DNA of 64,000 nt. Origin: Gracilinanus agilis (taxonomy: Eukaryota). The translations under genes were made by a program, and so were the position numbers. The notes beneath the pieces are model-generated. The model saw only the letters and a program-made list of their open reading frames with translations. It was not told the DNA's origin and made no database searches. Location: positions 114,845,986 to 114,909,985 of the forward strand of contig NC_058135.1 in assembly GCF_016433145.1 (NCBI RefSeq), in the 5' to 3' direction. This document shows, one piece after another, positions 2,407 through 44,750 of the stretch (the stretch's first letter is position 1; every line of letters starts with the position of its first letter).

Positions 2407-3734
2407 TAATTCTCTTTTTTTTTTTACCTCTGGTTTTATATATATTTATACATCTTGACATTTTATCCTATACAGTTTGTCATTGTTCCCTCTAAGTATA
2501 CTTCTTCTAGCTACCCTGATGATAATAACAATTTTTAAAAATTACCAATATCATCTTTTCTTATATAGATACAAATCATTTGAACTTTTTGGGTACCTTG
2601 AATTTTTTTTTACTTTTCCCCCTCTCTTAATTACTTTTTGGTGATTCTCTTGAGTTCTGTGTTTGCATATCAAATTTTCTGTTTAAGTCCGGTTTTTTCT
2701 TTATGAATACTGAGGTCTTCAATTTTATTAAATGACCATACTTTCCCTTGCAAGAATATAGGCAGTTTTGCTGGGTAGTTGATTCTTGATTATAGACCCA
2801 ATTCCCTTTCTTTCCAGAATATTGTATTCCATGCCTTTCAGTCCTTCAGTGTAGATGCAGCCAGATCCTGTGTTATCCTAACTGCATCTTAGTCCCTAGT
2901 ATCTTAATGACTTCTTCTTAGCAGCTTGTAATATTTTTTCCTTGGTCTGGTAGTTCTTGAATTTGGCTATAATATTCCTGGGAGTTGCCAGTTGTGGATT
3001 AAATGTAGCAGGTGATCTGTGGATTCTTTCAATCTCCACTTTTCCCTCTTGTTCCAGGATTTCAGGACAGTTTTCTTCTATAATTTCCTGTAGGATGAAG
3101 TCCAGGCTTTTTCTTTTGTCATGATGTTCCAATAGTCCAATAATTTTTAAATTGTCTCTCCAAGATCTGTTTTCAAGATCTAAGGTTTTGTTAATGAAGT
3201 GTTTCATATTTTCCTGAAATTTTTCATTCTTTTGGTTTTGTTTTATATATTCTTGCTGCCTTGTGAAGTCATTTGCTTCTAGTTGTTGAATTCTAATTTT
3301 TAAAGATTGAATTTCATCCCTGTCTTTTTGGTCATCCTTCTCCTTCTGGACTGATTTTCTTTGTTGATCACCTTTCACCTTCTTTGCCTCATTTTCAAGC
3401 TGGTCAATTTTGGCTTTGAAGACACTATTTTCTTATTTTATTTCATGTATTTTCTTTTTCAAATTGTCTTCAGCCTCTCTTGATTATTTTTTAAGTTCTT
3501 GAGTTAATTGAATTTTATGTTCTTCCAAAGCCTGTGTCCAATCCCCCATAATTTCTTTGTTTTGCTTTGAGTTCCTTGATCTTCTATTTAATTTGCTTTT
3601 TAATTCACTTCCTGGAAAGAAGCTGTCAAGTGTAATTTTTTTTCTTTTTCTGTTGTTTACTCATATTTTTTCCTTCTTTCCCTCCTGTGCTTTCTCTGCT
3701 TTCCTGGTAGATTAGGTTAAGCAGGTGGTTTTAA
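2407..3734 (-). mobile_element. ORF1-only (HAL1-like / 3'-truncated) L1 insertion with a 17-bp TSD
   Basis: The minus strand reads ATGAGTAAACAACAG (MSKQQKKKK..) through ORF1 (track ORF 2896-3378: DLENRSWRDNLKIIGL..IERIHRSP..KEKILQAA) into the ORF1-ORF2 spacer and an A-run. TGGAAACTGAGGGAATG is duplicated at 2390-2406 and 3735-3751. Confidence 0.85.
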
Positions 3735-4715: not shown

Positions 4716-5580
4716 CTCATATGTGCTCCCTTCTCCCTTCTAACACTGCCACCATCTTGGTGGTGGTGTAGGTCCTCATTCTCTCACACCTGTTCTAATA
4801 ATAAGCTGTTGGTTGGTCTGGCTTTAAGTCTCTCCCTACTCTAACCTTTCTTCCATTCAGCTGACAATTTTATTTTCCCAAAGAACGTCTGATTGTTTCA
4901 TTCTTGTTTTCAATCAATGTCATTGGTTCCCTCTCAGGATTCCTATCAACTTCAATGGCTCCAGGATCAAATAGTAAATATTCTATTTGACTCCTAAAGT
5001 TCTCCACAACCTCTACCTTCCAAGACTTCAGAAATCAAATGATTCCCTTGCATTTCTTTGCCCAGAATACTCCATCTCCCTGCTCTATAAATTTATATAG
5101 GCTGCCTCCACACCTGAAACTCTTTCCCTCGTTTTCTCTAATTCCTAGTTCCCTGGCTTCCCTTAAGTCTCAGCTGAAGTCCCACCTTCTACAAGAAGAC
5201 TTCCTGATACTCTTAATGCTAATGTGTNNNNNNNNNNNNNNNNNNNNNNNNNNNNNNNNNNNNNNNNNNNNNNNNNNNNNNNNNNNNNNNNNNNNNNNNN
5301 NNNNNNNNNNNNNNNNNNNNNNNNNNNNNNNNNNNNNNNNNNNNNNNNNNNNNNNNNNNNNNNNNNNNNNNNNNNNNNNNNNNNNNNNNNNNNNNNNNNN
5401 NNNNNNNNNNNNNNGATACCAATCTAAGGATACATAAATAGATATCTATCTTGTTTGTAAATAGTTGTTTGTATTTGTCTCTCCTCTGAGGCAAGCAAGG
5501 ATATTTTGCTTTTCGTCATATTACCACTATTTAGAACAGTCCTTGGCACATAATAAGTGTTGAATAAATGCTAGTTTGCT
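4715..5580 (+). mobile_element. L2 LINE 3' end (spans an assembly gap)
   Basis: 'ttaagtctcagctgaagtcccaccttctacaagaagacttcc' and the terminal 'ttggcacataataagtgttgaataaatgct' match the L2 3' tail. Confidence 0.85.
5228..5414. other. Assembly gap (other gaps: 25370-25521, 38245-38609, 49870-50027)
   Basis: Runs of N. Confidence 0.99.
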
Positions 5581-8500
5581 GGTTGCTCATTGACTATGAG
5601 GAAAGAGGAAAGTGAGAGGTTAGTACAGAGACATAGATACTTTGAGGAAGATAGAATAGAAACAAAGAGACTTAAAGAGAAAACAAAGTGATTTTCTCAT
5701 TAAATTAGGAAATGAAATCAACTATCAAAAGTTGTCCAGAAATGAATATAATAAGATATTAAGTTTACTTAAGGAAAGCATGAGAAAATAATAAAGGAAT
5801 GTTAAAGCCATGAATTAATTAGGCAAATGTATAAATTATGAGAAAAGGTAGTGTGATATTGGAAATTTGGGTATCCTTGAACTAATTTTGAGGTCCTAGA
5901 GGGGTCTTCAAACTACATTTCCCATAATTCCTTGCTTGTAGTCAGGAAGAGTAATAACATAGAGAAAAGTATAAAGACTGAGGACTGTATTGGTACTTCC
6001 TCTTTTCTGCCTGTGGAGCAGGAGCCAGAATGGGAGGAGGAGGCAACATGGTGCAACTTTCAAATGACTTTTAGTAAGGCACGTGGCTTTATTTATCTGA
6101 TTCCCAATAAATCCTTTAAAACCCTAATATTTTTAAATCTATCCTTTTATACCCATTTTATTTCTTACAGTATGTAACAAATGAATGATTATAACTCAGA
6201 GATAATATTTACTTAGAATGTTTTCATATATTTATTATGTTTAAGTACATGGTATTCATAATTTCTGAAATTTAAAGCTATTGTTGTTTTTATTTTTGGA
6301 ATAAAGCATTTTGAAAATTTCCTTAAATTTACCTTACTTATTGATTCACCATTAAAAATAAATTATTTATATTAATTAGCATGAGGTGAATTTATGCTAA
6401 TGAAATGTGAGCAAAGACCTATTGCATTTATAGACTGAAGGCAAAGGGACTATTGAATGCTGGATGACAGTTTTGATCTATGCTTACCACCTGTCAATAA
6501 TTTGTCAGCACACACACAAAAAAAAATAAAGTTCTAGTAATGCAACAGAATGTGATAGTTATTGTTTTTGGTCCTGAACATGAAAGTACCCAGATTAAAT
6601 ATAGTATAAAAAACAGTATAATGTTACCTTGCTTCAGACATGATATTTCCAGGAAAATATAGTAGAACTTCCTGACATGGCTTTCTACAGACCCTGAAAA
6701 AATCCTACTCATTAAATTCAACATCCATTTATTAATTGACCGCTCTGGGCATTGAGGTCTCCTAGGTGCTAAAAATATATATTACTTTTATTGCATAGCA
6801 TCTACCCTCAAGGAACTTGTGTTCTTCTTGTGGAGAAGGGGACAAAATAGATATTCATAATATTATCTTTCAGATTTATTTGGGGGCAAGGAGAGATACA
6901 AAGGCCTCTAAGAAAAAAGGAGAAATAGGCAATTTCACTTCAAAATCAGCATTCCTAATTCCAGGGATTACAAATTGGAGGTCTCTGTTACTCCAAAATT
7001 TAACCATAACAATCCACACATACTCCTGAAATGTGTTAATACTCTCATGAAGTATTTATGTGTGCTTTGATGATCCATGGCATGAAACTTCATTTTGAAA
7101 GTCATAAAGGAGAAAAACCATTAGCAATATATTAGAGAATTATGAGACTTAAACTATAAATTTTTCTATTTCCTTTCTTCTATTCTTTTCTCCTTCACCT
7201 TGTCCTTCTCCATCTCCTTCTTCAAGTTAATTGGCATCAGTGTTTTAAACTATTCAATTTCCAACCTTTACCTCCTCCTTAGGTAGCTTGTGCCTCCCCT
7301 ATACACAACTGGGGGCTCATCATATTGGTGTCAGATTTAGTATAGATATACAATTCACTTTTAACTCAACTGCAACTCAGAACTTTGAAGCTCAAGAAAT
7401 TCACCAAATTCAGCTTTTGCGTAGCAAGGACTTACAGCCTACAACACTATTCCAGCTAAAATGTTTCATTGTGGCATGAATTATTCTCCTCTATTTTCAG
7501 AACTGTGTTTTGGATTCTGTCTTATGCATTCATTGGTATTCAGGACTCCTACTAAGGAAATTCAATATACCAATATGTGTCATCATCTTTTCTGATATTC
7601 TTAAAAAGAACCTAGAAACCTGAGAGAATGAGTGACTTCTCCAGTGTTATATAAACAGTATGTGTCAGAGGACAGATTTGAACCCAGTTCTACATGACTC
7701 TAAGGTTAGCTCTCTATCCACTATTCCACAATGCATTAAAAATCTAGAATACTCTTAATTTAATATTGTTAGAGCTTTATTATTTTATTTAAGTATTCTT
7801 TTCTCCAATATAGATTCATTCTCTCTAAGTCTTTACAGTATTCAAAGTCTCTCTAAGTATTGATAACCTTCATGAATTGCAGAGCCTAAGAAATCTGTCA
7901 CCCTGTGGCCAGTTGCTGATAAACCTGAGATTAACTTGGGTGAAATACATAGAGTCCATTGCAGACAAGTGCTAGAAGCTCTATTTGGCTAATAATACAT
8001 GTCAAAACATACATTTTCCTGGTCTTTGAGTATCTAGGATCATTTCCACACTAAGATGGGACATTTAAGGATGATTTAAGGATTTTTTTAAATTTATTCA
8101 CAAAAATAAAATATATGGAAGCCTCTTTGATCTGTGACAGTATTTGTGTCATAGAATTATCTTACTAAAGTACAGATCTTAAATCAGAGTAAACCTCTCC
8201 ATCTTAGGCAATTCAGATTAGGCAATATGACATCAAAATAAATAATCATCATTACAGCTTTATATTACTCATTTTTGTGCTGTTTTGTAGTGGAAATACA
8301 AGTATAGTTTGAAGAAAATGCTATATTTATGCATATGTGTATGTGTGTGTGTGTGAGGGGGGGCTCAAACTGAATTAGCATGCCTATCATCAGAGCTCAT
8401 AAAATAAAAAGATTTCTCATATGAAATGTTAAAAGCAATGTCACTGTAAAAATGACCACAAACGTCCTTTTTGTAAAATAAAACAAAATAGGCCTTGTAT

Positions 8501-8756: not shown

Positions 8757-9790
8757 ATGAATTAATGAATCATTTAAGCATTTTTAGCACTCAACTTTGT
8801 CAAAAATACTTTGCTGAGCAAGAGGAATACAAAGACATTGAAGATTGACCTCACTCTCTAGGCAATTGCATTCTAATTGAGTAGACAACAAAAACATTTG
8901 GAAGATTTCATTTGCAAGTCAGATGTCAAGGTGTCTGGGTCCTTGGGGTACAATGACAAAGAAGATGTTAATGGTTCTTTAATGTTACTTTCTATAGATA
9001 CAATAATGTTGGTTTCTGATGTTGAACTAAATGTCTTTGGTGGCCAGAATTTCTTTTTTCCTTATTCAGAGAAGCTGTGACTATAGTTCCTGAAAGAGCC
9101 CTTATAGACTATGTCTCCATAGATGTTACATTTCAGGGTAATGGCTGAAGGCACTAAGCTGGAATTAGTGCTATTCCCAAAGCTCTTGGGTATATGGTCC
9201 AGCCTATCCATCAGAATCTGAGAGAATCTGGTTGTCATGGTAATGATGATGTGGTACATTTGGTACATGCCATTTCTTTCATACTGCCTTGCTGCTTTAG
9301 CTAGATTGGCTTTCCTTCTTTTCCTTTGTGTGGCTGCTGGTTGGCAGTTTATTGGGGGTGTCTAGCCTCTTCTCTCTAAGAGATGCTCCCCTATTTGAAG
9401 GCTCTTTGAGTCAAGCTGGAAACAATACTGGTAGATTGATAGGCACAGGATTCCTGTGCCGATTTGATTATTGGAAACAGCTGATCAGTAGTTGTTGCTG
9501 ATGGTGATGAAGAAAGTAGGTTTCTTCTCTAGAGTGATTTCTCCCTGTCAGTGATGGCTCCTGGGACTCCATTGTAGACAGGTATGATGCTTAGAAGGCT
9601 CTGATATCCTCAAGGGTCTTGGACTTGGGATCCCGAGTTGTCTCCATCAGAGTACAAGGGGAAATAATCAAGGTCATAGTCAAGGTCTGACTTGCCTGGC
9701 ACATGCCACCTCCTGTCTCTCACTCAGGCTACATGAGCCAAACTGGCTTGCCTGCTCTGTATGTGTCAACTCAGATAAGAATCCTGGAAG
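8757..9790 (-). mobile_element. Copy A of a chimeric L2-tailed retroposon carrying a Y-box cold-shock-domain fragment
   Basis: L2 3' tail at ~8757-8890. Minus-strand 9059-9012 = KKEILATKDI*FNIRN (YBX KKVLATKVLGTVKWFNVRN with a 12-nt deletion). Nucleotide homology to 43540-43715. Confidence 0.7.
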
Positions 9791-26451: not shown

Positions 26452-26824
26452 TTTCCTGGGCTTCACTAAGTCATTCAAAAAATCATAGAATTCAGCACTA
26501 AAACACATATTAGAAATAATATTGTCCAAGTCTTTCCACACCCTTGTTTCTCATTGCAAATGAGGAAATTGAGGCATAAACAAGTTGTTAATGGCTTGCC
26601 TAAAGAAACGTGGTTGTCTCTGGAACTAGAATTTAAATTCAAGTTTCTAGAATTCAAGTCCAATTTCCTTTCCAATATTCTTAAATAAAAAGGTTCTGTG
26701 CTATTGGAGGGAATACATGGATCAAAAGAAATAGCAAATTGTTTGACAGCTATGCACATTATACTTTAATCATGAGGAGAGGTAAAATTAGGGAGAATAG
26801 TTCAATAGTCATAATAGTCTAGAT

Positions 26825-27027
26825 CAGTGATGTGCAAACTTTTTAAAGAGGGGCCAAAGGAAAGGAAATGCTCATATGTCAGTCTGTTTCTAAGGCAACT
26901 CTTTCGAAGTTTCATTGTATTGTATCCTACTCATTGTATTCGTCAGATTAGGTATAATGTCACACAGCTGGATAGAACATTTCAGGGGGCCACGTCTGGC
27001 CCATGGGCCATAGTTTGCCCATCACTG
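26825..27027 (-). mobile_element. hAT (Charlie-type) MITE, family 1
   Basis: Terminal inverted repeats (TIRs) CAGTGATG(T/G)GCAAACT...AGTTTGCCCATCACTG. Perfect 8-bp TSD GTCTAGAT (26817-24 / 27028-35). Confidence 0.93.
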
Positions 27028-29079
27028 GTCTAGATGAGGGTTAATGAGGGCCTGAACTAAGGAGAAGAGGAGTGGAGATATTTGCAAGGGATATGGGTAG
27101 AGGTAGAAATGACAAAACCATATTACTTCAATTGTGCCTTGTAAATAATCCAGATTAGCAGATCCCAGGTGATGGGAAACACTACAAAAGTTCTTAAGCT
27201 TCCTTTGCGATCAATTTTGAATAGCATCCTTTTCACAATCCTTGTAAAATTAGTCTTCCACATTCTTAAATCTATAAGTGGATGGTTATGTAAGTGTCTA
27301 ATTAATCTGAGGACATTATGAACTGAACATTCCCCTTATTTTGCTCATTCTTAAAAAGATTTCCTTTTAAGTACTACAAAGGACAATATCTTGGAAAAAA
27401 GTTTAGAAGAGTTATAAATTTATGTGACATACAGGAATGCAGACTACATAGCTTTTGCATTGGGTCATTGTGTTTGTCAAATTAGAAAAAATCCAAAGGC
27501 ACCACTGGAGGGCTTTATCATGAATTCCAAAAAATGAGGTATACTGAATCAACTAATCTAAAAAAGTACCAAAACAGTCATAAAACAAGTAGCACTGATA
27601 TTCAGTCTAAGTGGCAATTCCCTGACCAAGATGCTGAGTCAATTTTTGAAATATGAATCTCTGAACAATGTCAGACCATACTGCTAAAAATATACTATCA
27701 ATACCCTCCCTTAAATTTTAATAATCCTGCAAATTCTCAAGTGGAATAATTGACTACAACAGGACAATAGGAATGGAACTCGCCGACATAAATTGTTCTT
27801 TTGGTATGGTAAGAATAGAATCAAAGAATATATATTAGAAGAAAGTTATGTCTGCATCTGATTACCAGTAATTTGACCTAGAATTATTTTTAAAATATAT
27901 ATAAATTTGTATGTTACATTGTAACTTAAATACTGAAACCTGTCTCACCAAATGTGTGCTCTAATTCTCTCCTAAAATATGTCTTTCTGTAAACAGGCCT
28001 TTTTATGCCTATGACCTATAAAAGTATATACCAAAAAAAAATACCATGCAAGTAAAAATGCTGAAAATAGAAACTCAGTCCTTATTCTACTTTTTCACAG
28101 CAGCAGTCCTTGAATATGACACCACTTCTCATGATCAATTCCTTTCCTTACCTTGTAGAACATTCAGAACACTGTGAATGTTTAAGCCTTCCTTTGGCAT
28201 ATCAAGAAGGATGGAGAAAAATATGCGAAGTGTTTGGAAGAGAAGGCTCTCATATGTTTTGTGCAAAGGGAGTGTGTGTTCCCCAGACCAAAGAAGAGAA
28301 TCATGCTTTCTATGACCACTAATGTAAATTTTAAAGCAACAAAAGTTTAAGGAGTTTCCTTATGATTTACTATGTACCTTCTGGTTTTGTTTTTAAGGAT
28401 TAAAAAGCCATGTTTAAATAATCAAAAAGAAACAAATTATCCAGTTGAAAGAAATCAAAATTCTAAGAAGTGCTCATTAATGAACTCAACCCTATGACGT
28501 TTATGGGCAATGTTTCTGTTTCCATTTCTTTGGTGAACAAAATCCCATGAGCCCTTAATCAACAGAATATCATCTGTAAATTAAAAAAAAAAAAGCTCAT
28601 ACATTTAAATGTATTCTAATACCCTCACTTCATCTTCACCCACATGAAAGTCCCTTGACAAACATTTGGCAACCTGAAAATGGGCCAAACATTATGTAGA
28701 ATGTCAAAAAGGCCTTGATTTTTCTTCCTCGATAAATCAATGAAGGCTGTCAAAAAAACAAAAAACTTTTGCTTTTGTTTCTAAAATTTTAAGTTATTTC
28801 TTTTCTCTCTGAAATAAATTTAATACAGGCCTGCTACAAAAGATTATCTTGCTTAAAACAGGACAAGTTTTCATGAGTGAAAAAAGAACTATTCAAAAGT
28901 GAACCTAACCCATAGCTCACAGAAAAGTTATAGAATATTATATAGCAATCACTTCATAGAATTACAAGATCAAAGTTTTAGTCTCTGATGACAATCTAGT
29001 CAAATCAAAACCCCAAAGTATTGCCCCTTATTACATACCTAACAAGTGTTTATAGCCTTTGCTTTTAAAGTCCTCTAAT

Positions 29080-38189: not shown

Positions 38190-38244
<55 letters not shown>

Positions 38245-38609
38245 NNNNNNNNNNNNNNNNNNNNNNNNNNNNNNNNNNNNNNNNNNNNNNNNNNNNNNNN
38301 NNNNNNNNNNNNNNNNNNNNNNNNNNNNNNNNNNNNNNNNNNNNNNNNNNNNNNNNNNNNNNNNNNNNNNNNNNNNNNNNNNNNNNNNNNNNNNNNNNNN
38401 NNNNNNNNNNNNNNNNNNNNNNNNNNNNNNNNNNNNNNNNNNNNNNNNNNNNNNNNNNNNNNNNNNNNNNNNNNNNNNNNNNNNNNNNNNNNNNNNNNNN
38501 NNNNNNNNNNNNNNNNNNNNNNNNNNNNNNNNNNNNNNNNNNNNNNNNNNNNNNNNNNNNNNNNNNNNNNNNNNNNNNNNNNNNNNNNNNNNNNNNNNNN
38601 NNNNNNNNN

Positions 38610-38667
<58 letters not shown>
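38190..38667. repeat. (GA)n microsatellite spanning an assembly gap
   Basis: Pure GA repeats on both sides of the N-run. Confidence 0.95.
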
Positions 38668-39128: not shown

Positions 39129-39329
39129 CAGTGATGGGCAAACTATGGCCTGCGGGTCAGATGCAGACCCCTGAAATGTTCTATCCCACAAGGAGACATC
39201 ATTCCTAATCTGACGAACACAATGAGGTTACAATACAATGAAACTTCGAAATAGTTGCCTTAGAAACAGACTGACAGATGAGCATTTCCTTTCCTTTAGC
39301 CCCCTCTTTAAAAAGTTTGACCCTCACTG
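39129..39329 (+). mobile_element. hAT MITE, family 1
   Basis: TIR CAGTGATGGGCAAACT. Perfect 8-bp TSD GTCTTATT (39121-28 / 39330-37). Homologous to 26825-27027. Confidence 0.93.
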
Positions 39330-42300
39330 GTCTTATTAAATAAAAACTAAGCTGATTTTTGAAGAAATAATGAGAAAAGGTACATTTCTCTTTTCAGAGG
39401 TAAGGAATTATGAGTTTGAAATAATGACATATCATCAGATTAATGTAATGTGATGGTTAGTTTTTCTGAACAGTTTTCATTACTCTCTGTCTCTTTTTTT
39501 TTCATTCCATAATAAAAACGATGGCTTTCAAGGCAAAGGAATAAAGAAGAACATATTTGGAAATGAAAGTTACGTAAAAATGAGATATCGATATAAATTT
39601 TAAATCAATATGAATGGCTTTTTCCAATTGCTATTAATAGATATAAAATGCTTTAAAACAAATTAGAAAATATGGTAAAAGTAAATTTTAGAGGGATGTT
39701 GCAGCAGGCACATTGATTCACTGCTAGTGGAACTGTAAACTGGTCGATCCATTTCCATTTCGGAAAACAATTTGGTATTATATAGAAAGTATAAGTAAAC
39801 TTTTCTTAATGACATTTATCCTAGATATCCTACAGCTGGGCATGTACCCCCACAGAGGCCAAGGAAAGAAACAGGGATGATAGAGCTTATGTAGGCATAT
39901 TAGTGGAAACAATGTGTCCCCAGTGATGGGAGAATGGTTTGAATATGGACCATGAATTCTTGGAACCATGAGAAGGATTGATAGATATGATACAGAGTAA
40001 ACTAATCAGAAAAAAACACTTTAATTATAGTAATAATATTTATATAACTACTTACTAAGTTCCAGGATTCATTTAATCCTCAGAACAACCCTATAATGTA
40101 GGTGCCATATTTATCTCCATGTTAAAGATAAGGAAACTAAAACAAGTAGAGATTAAGTGACTTGTCCAGCATCACATGTTGTTCCACTAAGCTACATCTC
40201 CTAGCTTTGAATTCAACATAAAATAAAGGAATGATGAAACATTATGATCATAATGGCCCATCTTGGCCTTACACAAGAGACACCCATTCTTTGAAGGTTA
40301 TCGAGGACAAAGATCACAGAATGTTTTCTTTGAGTCCATTTAATGTTGTATGTGTTGACTGGTTTTGTTTAACTTTTTTTGTTGTTGTAATGATCAAAGA
40401 CTCATTGGGGAATGGAGGAGGGAGGGACAAATAGAGAAAATATCTAAGATATAAAAATAAAAAGCATTGGTAAAAGTTAAAAGCCAAAAAATTTAAAATT
40501 TAAATTTAAATATTTCATTTTGATGTTGCTCTATGCATGTGTGCTTGAAGAAATACTTTCCCCCTATTGTTCTGGAAAACTTAGATTACTTGAATTTTAA
40601 AGTTTAAAAAGTACTTTTCTTTAGGATGTAGATTGTGCTTTTGTGGAAGGGAAATCTTTAAGTTCAGTGAGCTTATAGAACTCCTTTAAAGCCACATAGT
40701 TTATAAATGTGTTTAACATCATGTGATTCAGGCCAACTAATCCCAAATACAGGGCTTCTTTCATTAGACCAAAATATCTCTCGTTATGTCCAGTTAAGTA
40801 CACTGACTCCTGGATATATAGGGCACAGGTTTGAAAGTAATGAGACTTGTGAACAAACATAATGCTAGCTATATTAGCAGACTGTTATTTTAACCATATA
40901 TATGTACTATTTATGCCAACCAAGGGCTCAAATTAGTTGATTTCATTAGTAGCATATTTATACATATAAGCAAATATGATAAGACAAAATAAATATCTTT
41001 CTAGTTCAAATAATTCATTGTTAATATTGAATTAGGAATAATTTCTCCCAGTTATACTGGTGATAAACATCCATAATGGAATGAAGTATCAATATCCTCA
41101 AACCACTCCTAATATGTATTTCTTCTTCTTTATATTTCGAGAGACACATAATTTCCTTTGTAATTAATCCTGGATTTAGAGACTTGCAAATGGGAAAACA
41201 TAATAACCATAGTAAATAAATACTAAAAAATAAAGAAATTAAACATCTAACCCTAGAGCAACCAAAGAAAATCTTTTAAGGACCAGAAATCTAAAACTGT
41301 TGCAAAGACCTATTCCATTTTCAAGACAATTTGGTGATGTCGCATCCTACTGATGCCAGGATTTTAAAGACCAATCTGCTTATAGCAAAGACTCATAATC
41401 CTAGAGAAATCTGATGTTACCAATGATTAATCTCTAGCCTCTTTGTTAACCCAATAGCACTCTTTCTGTGATTTATTGTGGCAATATATCTTTTTTCTAT
41501 AAAGACCAGTGGGACTCAGCACTTTAGAAAATCAGATATTTCCTGGAAATTCACCATTTTTTATCAATACTAATGAAACAAATGACTTTCAAGTAAGAAT
41601 AACTTATGAGTTCTTAGGACTTTCTATTTGGCGGCAGTTTTGTCTAAAATAGAATTGTCATTGTTAAAACATTTATCAGGGCAGACAAAGAGCACTTGAT
41701 TTGTAATCACAACTCTTATGTTTCTAATATGTCAGACCCTGGGCAAGTCACTTTATTCTGATCACAGCATGTGGAAAATAGTTGGTAACACTATGATGCT
41801 TGAGATAGAAAGGATCTTAGAGGATGTCTAGTATATTCTGTTTATTTTACAAATGTGAAAATTGAGGCCAGAGAAGTTTAAGTAACTTGGCAAGGAAATA
41901 TAGTAGACAAAATAAGTTTGAGATTTGAACCTGGATTCTCTGAACCCAAAGTTAGTCCTCATTCCACTAATTCATTGAGTTAGAGAGGTAGTTAAGTGGT
42001 AAAACAGATGAAATTCTGGGCCTGGAATCAAGAATTTCTGAGTTCAAATAAAACTTCTTATTTACCAGCAAACTATTTTATATATTTTTTCAAAACCCAG
42101 CTTTTGTCTTTACTTATCAATTACATCTTTCCATTTTATTTATATCTCTTCTTTTATTTTCATAAATTTGACTTTATTATTGAGTATTTTTACTTGTTAA
42201 CTTTTATCGCATGTTCAATTCATTGATTTACTTCTCTTTTATCAATAAGAATGATTAGAGATATAATTTTTCACAACTGCTTTATTTAGCTAAATACACA

Positions 42301-42896
42301 ATTTAATTAAATTGTCTCATTCTAATTTTCATTGATGAATTTTTTGTTGTTTCTATAATTTGTAATGTGACCCACCAGTTATTTAGAAATATATTGTTTA
42401 GTATCCAATTGCTTTTATATTGTTTTTAAGAATACTTTATTGAATATAATCTTATTTTATTATAGTCAGTAAATAATTTGTTTAGTAGTTGTGCATTTCT
42501 ATATTGTGGTAATATCTTTATACCTTCAATGTCTGGTAAATTTTTTTTTAAGGTACTATTGTTCACAAGAGGAGTCCATAAATTCTTTTTGATTTCCAGA
42601 GATCCATTAGATGGGGTTTTTTAAAGCTCTATTTGGTTGTAATAAAAGGAAGGGAGGAGAAGGGGAAGAGACAGAGGGTGAGGAGGAAGGCCTGTGTTAA
42701 ACTACTAAGAACATAAGAAAGACAAAAAGCCCAAAGCAGAAAGAAGTATGTAAAACTAGACCCCCAGATGATAAATGAACAATGATTTTCATACCTAAAG
42801 AGGGAAAATAATAATAATCCTATAATGTATTGATTAAATACTATATTATAAAAAAGGATGACTCAAAAATCATCAACAAAGAACCATGTTCTATGA

Positions 42897-43260
42897 CCCT
42901 GATGGCAAACCTATGACACACATGTCAGCACTGACACGTGTAGCCATCTTCGATGACACACGGCCACATACAGACAAGTATGGGGCCACATGCCGAGGCT
43001 GAAACATTTACTGCAGTGTAGTGTAGACACTCTGTGCCAGAGGTCTTTAGACCAAAACAACTGTCCCTAAGCAGGTAAGTTAAATAATTAGATTTTGGTT
43101 TATTAAATACAGTTATATATTACAATTACACATTTTTGTTATTTAAACTATAAATATCATGAAATTATGGGTTTTTTTTCTCGAAGTGACACACCACCTG
43201 AGTTGTGCTCGGTTTTTGGTGAATTTTGACACACCAAGTTCAAAAGGTTGCCTATCACTG
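42897..43260 (+). mobile_element. hAT MITE, family 2 (nhAT1/hAT1-like, 364 bp)
   Basis: TIRs C(CC)TGATGGCAAACC...GGTTGCCTATCACTG. Perfect 8-bp TSD TTCTATGA (42889-96 / 43261-68). Subterminal GACAC repeats. Confidence 0.9.
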
Positions 43261-43329
43261 TTCTATGAGCTACATAGAGAACATGGAACAAAATATAGAA
43301 CAAATTTGTAAAGATCAAAGAGTCTATAC

Positions 43330-43490
43330 CAGTGATGGGCAAACTATGGCCTGAGGCCAGATGCGGCCCCTTAAATGTTCTATCTGCTGTACAGGATACA
43401 ATACAATGAAACTTTGAAAGAGCTGTCTTAGAAAGAGACTGACAGATGAGCATTTCCTTTGGCCCCTCTTTAAAAAGTTTGCCTATCCTA
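43330..43490 (+). mobile_element. hAT MITE, family 1, internally deleted copy
   Basis: Left TIR CAGTGATGGGCAAACT after GTCTATAC. The right TIR is degenerate (AGTTTGCCTATCCTA) and the right TSD is only partly matching (GTCCTTGC). Confidence 0.85.
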
Positions 43491-44750
43491 GTCCTTGCTT
43501 TTAAGGAGCTCGCATTCTAATAGGGAGAGATAATACCTATAGGTTTTAGGTGTAAATCAAATGGAAAGGTCCTATGGTCCTTAGGATGTGTGGACAAAGG
43601 AGAGAAGGCTTCATCTTTAATGTAATCTCCACTTACAAGAAACCTATCTGTTCTAATGTTGAACCATTTAACAACGCCAAGTATTTTGCTGCTGAGAATT
43701 TTCTTTTCCGAATGATCAAGTCGCAGAGGCCACTAGTGAGGTAGAGGCTGCATCACTTGAGGAGGAAATAGCCAGGTCTCACACCCATAAAAGATGCTTC
43801 CCTAGTTGATGATGGGGGGAGGAAGGTGGAAGAAGCACTGTAAGTGATCCAGTGTCTCTCAGGGGAACTGGTTTAACTTTCCTGGCACCATCAGCCTCTT
43901 GTTTCTGCTACAGGGTACCTTATTATTTCATGAAGTAAAGCAAGAGCAGTAGTTCTCCTCAACTCGTCTTCTCAAACTGGGAGTAGATTTTCTCTTCCCT
44001 ATTTCCCCAGGAACATCTTTACCAGTTCAATGGGGCTTCCCAGATCTTCCATCCTTTTGGAGTTTAAGAGGCCATCTCTCAATCCTTATTAATGAGGAAA
44101 ATAATAATTATATCATTCTCCTCTTCCCTCCACATAGAGCACTTCTATGGCAGAAGTCCTTTGCTGGATTTGACCACTGACATCCCTTGTCACACATAAG
44201 CCCAGAGATATATCCAATTCTTTTAGTCACTTATTGTGTGACACTTTTTGTGTGATGTAGTATGTCATCATCCATTGATCAAAGAACTTCACATCTTTCA
44301 AATTGATTGAAGACTTGTTCACATCTAGTTTTTTTATAATAACCTTGATTGATGCAATCCAGCAGCTATCTGGGTCTTCTGTTAACATATTAATGATGGT
44401 GAAAGTTCAAAATCTCCATGTTCTTACATATGCATGAGCTACTTATACAATTACAATATTTACTGGTATATTTGCCTAAATTAGTATTGATTTCCCTCAG
44501 CATGGAGTATTCATAAAAAATGGAAGTAATACACTGATCAAAAATGTCATTGTCCCTACTAGCTACCAGATCCCTAGAGCTGATAGCAGCAACAATTGAA
44601 TCTAGTGAGGATCCAGTAAGGCCACCAGGTACCTTGGTCAACCCCAGAAGTGGACTGACTGCATTACCAATAACACCATGTTTGATAAGTTAATTCAGCT
44701 TAGTAAGAGATTAACTAACTCATCCTTCAGCAATGCCATGCTCAGAAGTG
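43491..44750 (-). mobile_element. Copy B of the chimeric L2-tailed retroposon with a Y-box cold-shock-domain fragment and upstream ORF-like sequence
   Basis: L2 tail remnant 'aaggagctcgcattctaatagggagagataata' (43503-35). Minus-strand 43708-43652 = EKKILSSKILGVVKWFNIR (13/19 identical to YBX3 [19 protein letters not shown]). Confidence 0.75.

Follow-up and report, generated by a model that had tools for sequence, protein, structure and literature searches.

The sequence examined here lies on the minus strand of a 64,000-nt window, the whole stretch of DNA that was analysed, and raises the question of how part of a Y-box gene came to be joined to an L2-type 3' tail. The join is found at two places, copy B, where the Y-box resemblance was recognised, and copy A (Table 1). 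We asked what the Y-box piece is, whether the two places descend from one fusion, where the element begins and ends, and which founder could have given rise to both.

On the minus strand of copy B, positions 43711-43604 translate into 36 residues free of stops, reproducing exactly the translation given in the initial annotation. They represent a Y-box cold-shock domain (CSD) up to about its midpoint, corresponding to approximately residues 50-85 of YB-1. When this peptide was compared with PDB chains by phmmer, the top matches were Y-box proteins only, namely human and zebrafish YB-1 and YBX2, with E values of 5e-5 to 6e-4. A YB-1 fragment searched against the whole window by tblastn recovered one place, copy B (E = 1.2e-7), and phmmer against 1.84 billion representative proteins gave a single match to the copy B peptide, a protein with two Y-box CSDs (P0001; E = 5.3e-5). 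The earlier identification of a Y-box CSD fragment at this site is thus confirmed by matches in PDB, in the window and in a large protein library, and, as judged by these comparisons, the resemblance is very unlikely to be due to chance.

The resemblance is closest in the initial 19 residues, 13 of which are identical to Y-box proteins, and is weak at the position of RNP1, which now reads DRFLV (versus GYGFI). The match stops at Phe85 of YB-1, the opening residue of RNP2 (VFVH), so that the Y-box sequence does halt at the start of RNP2, as first described. With the whole 71-codon open frame of copy B as query, phmmer found no match in PDB beyond the CSD fragment, and a search of short predicted proteins with the same 71-residue frame yielded no candidate family member. 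The peptide, which retains about 35 of the approximately 70 residues of the domain, did not reach the Pfam CSD model (PF00313), because the fragment is both short and decayed. The EKK and LATK residues are, we presume, closer to YBX3 than to YB-1, which has DKKVIATK in this region. Neither copy has a complete CSD with both RNP1 and RNP2; the Y-box piece is a gene-fragment relic, not a domain.

Copy A lies 34 kb from copy B on the same strand. By itself its Y-box match is weak (tblastn E = 8 window-wide and 0.011 inside 600 bp), with RNP1 out of frame, and as DNA it ranks approximately fourth among window sites compared with the CSD part of copy B; its position is exactly that predicted by homology to copy B. 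In local alignments, the CSD parts of the two copies gave z = 7.0, with none of 200 shuffles scoring as well, and the segment that follows, here called the linker, gave z = 7.9, with 41/64 identical and all 200 shuffles beaten. The homology extends into the tail motif ATTAGAATGC. The MAFFT alignment of the two copies is unbroken between the beginning of the CSD and ATTAGAATGC, passing ACATTAAAGA, a motif common to both in the junction zone, with a mean identity of approximately 68%. A profile built from both copies found these two places alone in the window, and no third copy. The Y-box residues that they retain differ, copy A having kept LATK and IRN and copy B ILG.VKWFNIR, which indicates that their common ancestor was nearer to YBX than either is now. 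The recurrence of the same geometry 34 kb away is therefore established as homology through CSD, linker and tail, and the alignment bears out a junction of single origin common to the two copies. The break between Y-box and L2 sequence probably falls somewhere within 43650-43610 of copy B, a range that stays ambiguous with two decayed copies.

Table 1. Positions in the window of the parts of copies A and B, and of the insertions in copy B.
Feature	Positions	Strand	Remarks
Copy B head	43712..43918	-	blocks 43918-43870 and 43809-43769 common with copy A
Copy B CSD fragment	43604..43711	-	RNP1 decayed; ends at first RNP2 residues
Copy B linker, from CSD fragment to tail motif	43522..43603	-	kept in copy A, z 7.9
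Copy B proximal L2/MIR-type 3' tail	43492..43521	-	TAGAATGCGAGCTCC, exact pattern match
MITE 1, in copy B tail, not part of the element	43321..43491	-	74% identical to 26834-27034; TIRs by eye
Copy B tail between the MITEs	43261..43320	-	putative, by eye against the L2 consensus
MITE 2, hAT-like, in copy B tail	42897..43260	-	8-bp duplication TCATAGAA
Copy B last tail part (approximate)	42856..42896	-	sequence read; end near 42860, approximate
Copy A head	9064..9766	-	blocks 9732-9684 and 9398-9363 common with copy B
Copy A decayed CSD fragment	8975..9063	-	minus strand 9063-8975: KEILATK, loss of about 4 codons with a stop, FNIRN
Copy A linker and uninterrupted L2-type tail	8757..8974	-	8-mer ATTCATTA twice at the terminus

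The linker had been described as about 80 nt of unrelated sequence, a view that its conservation between copies A and B contradicts: being kept in both, it belongs to the element. It opens with a box of the GAAGCCTTC type and is probably L2 3'UTR. The same box resembles the one that closes a peptide-like L2 stretch at 5150-5200. The L2 3' region of the window that contains this stretch (4930-5640) gave no significant alignment with the linker and is too diverged for such a comparison. This L2-type region lies on the plus strand, its peptide-like stretch reads SLKSQLKSHLLQEDF, and a run of masked N (5229-5415) splits it. It has no Y-box piece, which means that the L2 tails of the window are not all linked to a CSD.

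For the tails, L2 identity is likewise our assumption, based on the L2/MIR 3' consensus, with which TAGAATGCGAGCTCC and the terminal ATTCATTA repeat appear to agree. The tail of copy A showed no significant structure when folded (z = -0.27), and Rfam had no match in the whole window. The terminal 8-mer repeat of copy A corresponds to the tail type of CR1-mobilised SINEs, which consists of a hairpin and an 8-nt microsatellite (PMC5729268). In copy B the tail is broken by two MITEs. Position 43491, which the initial annotation had taken as a boundary of the element, is the insertion point of the first of them, and the tail resumes at 43320-43261. The second is flanked by the TCATAGAA duplication at 43268-43261 and 42896-42889; a clean 8-bp target duplication of this kind is typical of hAT elements. 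We note that the two MITEs share related TIRs of the CAGTGAT.GGCAAAC type, and that related MITE copies are present at 26821-27034 and 39129-39333, 86% identical to each other. Other repeats of the window include an L1 ORF1 fragment on the minus strand (2899-3378), which is open over 160 codons, has relatives carrying Pfam PF02994 and is 73-79% identical to L1 ORF1 proteins of Monodelphis domestica, its best matches; this assigns the genome to an opossum or a near relative. A (GA/TC)n simple repeat lies beside a masked N run at 38220-38640.

Upstream of the CSD, the two copies share two blocks. Local alignment of 43918-43870 of copy B with 9732-9684 of copy A gave z = 6.9, and that of 43809-43769 with 9398-9363 gave z = 5.6. 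Directly before the CSD, copy B carries a frameshifted stretch rich in Ala and Ser, which appears to fit the N-terminus of YBX, and the head of copy B may stem from YBX N-terminal or 5'UTR sequence. Copy A contains an internal duplication of approximately 165 nt (9766-9602 versus 9331-9169, offset 435 nt; z = 8.0, nhmmer E = 3.7e-6), which is old and absent from copy B. Beyond about 43960, copy B showed no homology to copy A (z = 2.2; nhmmer none), and the three upstream ORF pieces matched no Pfam family, reverse transcriptase included, in a search whose sensitivity is limited by their decay. An 'ORF-like body' reaching to 44700 had been proposed as part of the element; as it is not shared with copy A and belongs to no Pfam family, we do not retain it. 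No L2 ORF2, with its endonuclease and reverse transcriptase, was detected upstream of either copy, and truncated copies need none.

Both copies are dead and very old, and neither can encode a domain now. Copy B has lost RNP1 and received two MITEs in its tail; in copy A there are stops as well as a deletion. L2 mobility in therians is reported to have ended more than 100 Ma ago (PMC4408412), and the identity of approximately 68% between the copies agrees with this date. The copies show no sign of a present function.

Taking these features together, we consider it rather probable that copies A and B are relics of an ancient non-autonomous retroposon, whose founder joined a spliced YBX mRNA to the 3' end of an L2 and was copied by L2 in trans. 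The 5' part of the founder would have come from the beginning of a Y-box (YBX3-like) mRNA after splicing, as far as about codon 70-85 in YB-1 numbering, and its 3' part the final 250-300 nt of an L2 LINE. In this scheme, an L2 reverse transcriptase would have started on L2 RNA, copied its last 250-300 nt, and then switched template to an abundant germ-line YBX mRNA, copying to the 5' end of that mRNA and thereby making the chimera. Transcripts of the chimera, which end like L2, would have been recognised by the L2 reverse transcriptase, as those of MIR are; with a recognisable 3' end, the chimera could have been copied repeatedly, its junction unchanged each time, and the half cold-shock domain would have been a passenger. 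The template switch, the trans-mobilisation by L2, the size of the family and the assignment to YBX3 are what we infer; for template switching there is a precedent in a proposal on how new SINEs originate (PMC5729268).

In mouse, exon 1 of Ybx3 encodes the first 79 residues, and deletion of exons 2-5 leaves products that keep only the N-terminus encoded by exon 1 (PMC10217384). Set against this exon layout, the contiguity of N-terminus and CSD in the Y-box piece points to a spliced mRNA as its source, an origin that the sequence makes plausible. The capture of a YBX mRNA by an L2 tail, as first suggested, thus stands as regards the Y-box origin and the shared junction, and is plausible as regards the spliced source. 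Against the chimera speaks the fact that a head derived from mRNA has no internal promoter, so that sustained transcription of a master copy needs explaining. The family is deduced from two copies in one 64,000-nt window. A metagenome scan with the junction pattern returned one match, an unrelated AT-rich contig, and no marsupial Y-box/L2 retroposon was found in the literature; repeat libraries were outside this search, so novelty is not implied.

The difficulty over transcription would disappear if the copies belonged, as 5'-truncated members, to an autonomous L2 subfamily carrying the YBX piece at the start of its 3'UTR or at the end of ORF2, since neither a separate master gene nor a promoter would then be needed. 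Such a subfamily is also favoured by the tails, in that only two clear L2-type tails were found in the window and both are joined to a CSD, and by the sequence upstream of the CSD, which is unlike a Y-box N-terminus past about 15 residues. The upstream ORF pieces, with no Pfam family and no reverse transcriptase, argue in the other direction, as do the fading of homology between the copies at approximately 200 nt (copy B) to 700 nt (copy A) upstream of the CSD and the Ala/Ser-rich stretch with its fit to the YBX N-terminus. On balance we hold this explanation to be unlikely, although it deserves consideration. We give less credence still to a truncated or mis-spliced transcript of a YBX gene, ending in a sense L2 tail that lay in an intron or in an alternative last exon, and retroposed repeatedly by L2. 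In that case the junction would be constant because it marks the edge of an exon and not a template switch, and a strong germ-line promoter would account for sustained transcription. The end of the Y-box match may lie close to such an edge, exons 2-5 of mouse Ybx3 being small (PMC10217384), and a GTAAGT is present at 43634-43629 of copy B, in the zone where the match decays; the same GTAAGT is missing from copy A.

That the element might be a single chimeric pseudogene duplicated locally, with just two loci, had already been raised in the initial annotation, and the position of the copies 34 kb apart on the same strand is what a segmental duplication could produce. Past the tails, however, the copies have unrelated 3' flanks (z = -0.1, compared with z = 7-8 inside the element), and the element alone stands out when the window is compared with itself. 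The shared junction, the end of homology at the 3' terminus of the tail and the unrelated flanks argue for separate retropositions and not for local duplication, which we regard as highly improbable. Least probable of all is that the L2 3' region resembles a CSD by chance, or that the locus is a live exon. The peptide-like stretch of the L2 3' region does end in EAF/EDF (5150-5200), overlapping the last residues of the CSD match, and the frame of copy B is open over 71 codons. Nevertheless, the identity to Y-box proteins at 13 of 19 residues falls over a part with no L2 counterpart and reaches E = 1.2e-7 window-wide, copy A contributes LATK, and an exon is contradicted by the destroyed RNP1 and by the stops in copy A. 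We have also considered, as a very unlikely variant of the founder, a 'half-L2', that is, a non-autonomous partner of L2 with a reading frame of its own ending in a captured Y-box RNA-chaperone module. If true, it would represent an ORF1-like protein built from a host CSD, and would explain how an element headed by an mRNA was amplified. The chimera of spliced YBX mRNA and L2 3' end is the reading that we retain in what follows.

Such a chimera is an unusual founder for a LINE-dependent repeat. To our knowledge, pol III RNAs form the basis of almost all partners of stringent LINEs, L2 and CR1 among them, and mRNAs, having no LINE tail, are regarded as poor templates for LINEs of this kind. If true, a family in which an mRNA head precedes an L2 tail would mean that the addition of a tail suffices to make a coding transcript amplifiable, and would provide a marker for the phylogeny of marsupials and for the time at which L2 was active. 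In marsupial genomes, the element would also account for fragments resembling Y-box sequence, which might wrongly be annotated as pseudogenes or exons of YBX.

Comparison with known systems places the element between several classes of retrocopy. Like the processed pseudogenes of YBX genes, it has Y-box coding sequence that lacks introns and lies at a non-genic site; unlike them, it stops in mid-domain and continues into an L2-type tail, with the same truncation in both copies, and the poly(A), the mRNA 3'UTR and the C-terminal part, which mark an L1-type processed pseudogene, are absent from copies A and B. It resembles the chimeric retrocopies made by L1 through template switching (U6-L1, mRNA-L1), in which a single retroposition event places intronless host RNA 5' of a LINE 3' end. 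Those retrocopies are mostly one-off, with variable break points, whereas copies A and B, though diverged, have a single junction in common, implying that amplification followed the fusion, and the partner would be L2 and not L1. HAL1 elements ('half-L1'), which are non-autonomous LINE derivatives with ORF1 only, would offer a parallel to a 'half-L2' in which a LINE tail follows an ORF1-like body; unlike in HAL1, the upstream ORF pieces matched no protein family, ORF1-like or other, and copy A does not share the body upstream in copy B.

A further likeness concerns the SINEs with LINE tails, such as MIR, the partner of L2, and TguSINE1 and PittSINE, the partners of CR1 (PMC5729268). Their heads derive from tRNA and bring an internal pol III promoter, whereas the head here would come from a spliced coding mRNA, a pol II product, and the element, with approximately 0.5-1 kb common to both copies, exceeds a SINE in length. 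In common with these SINEs, it would combine a head of host RNA with a stringent LINE's 3' end and a short terminal microsatellite, and in the model proposed here it would also share with them an origin by template switching and copying in trans by the LINE enzyme.
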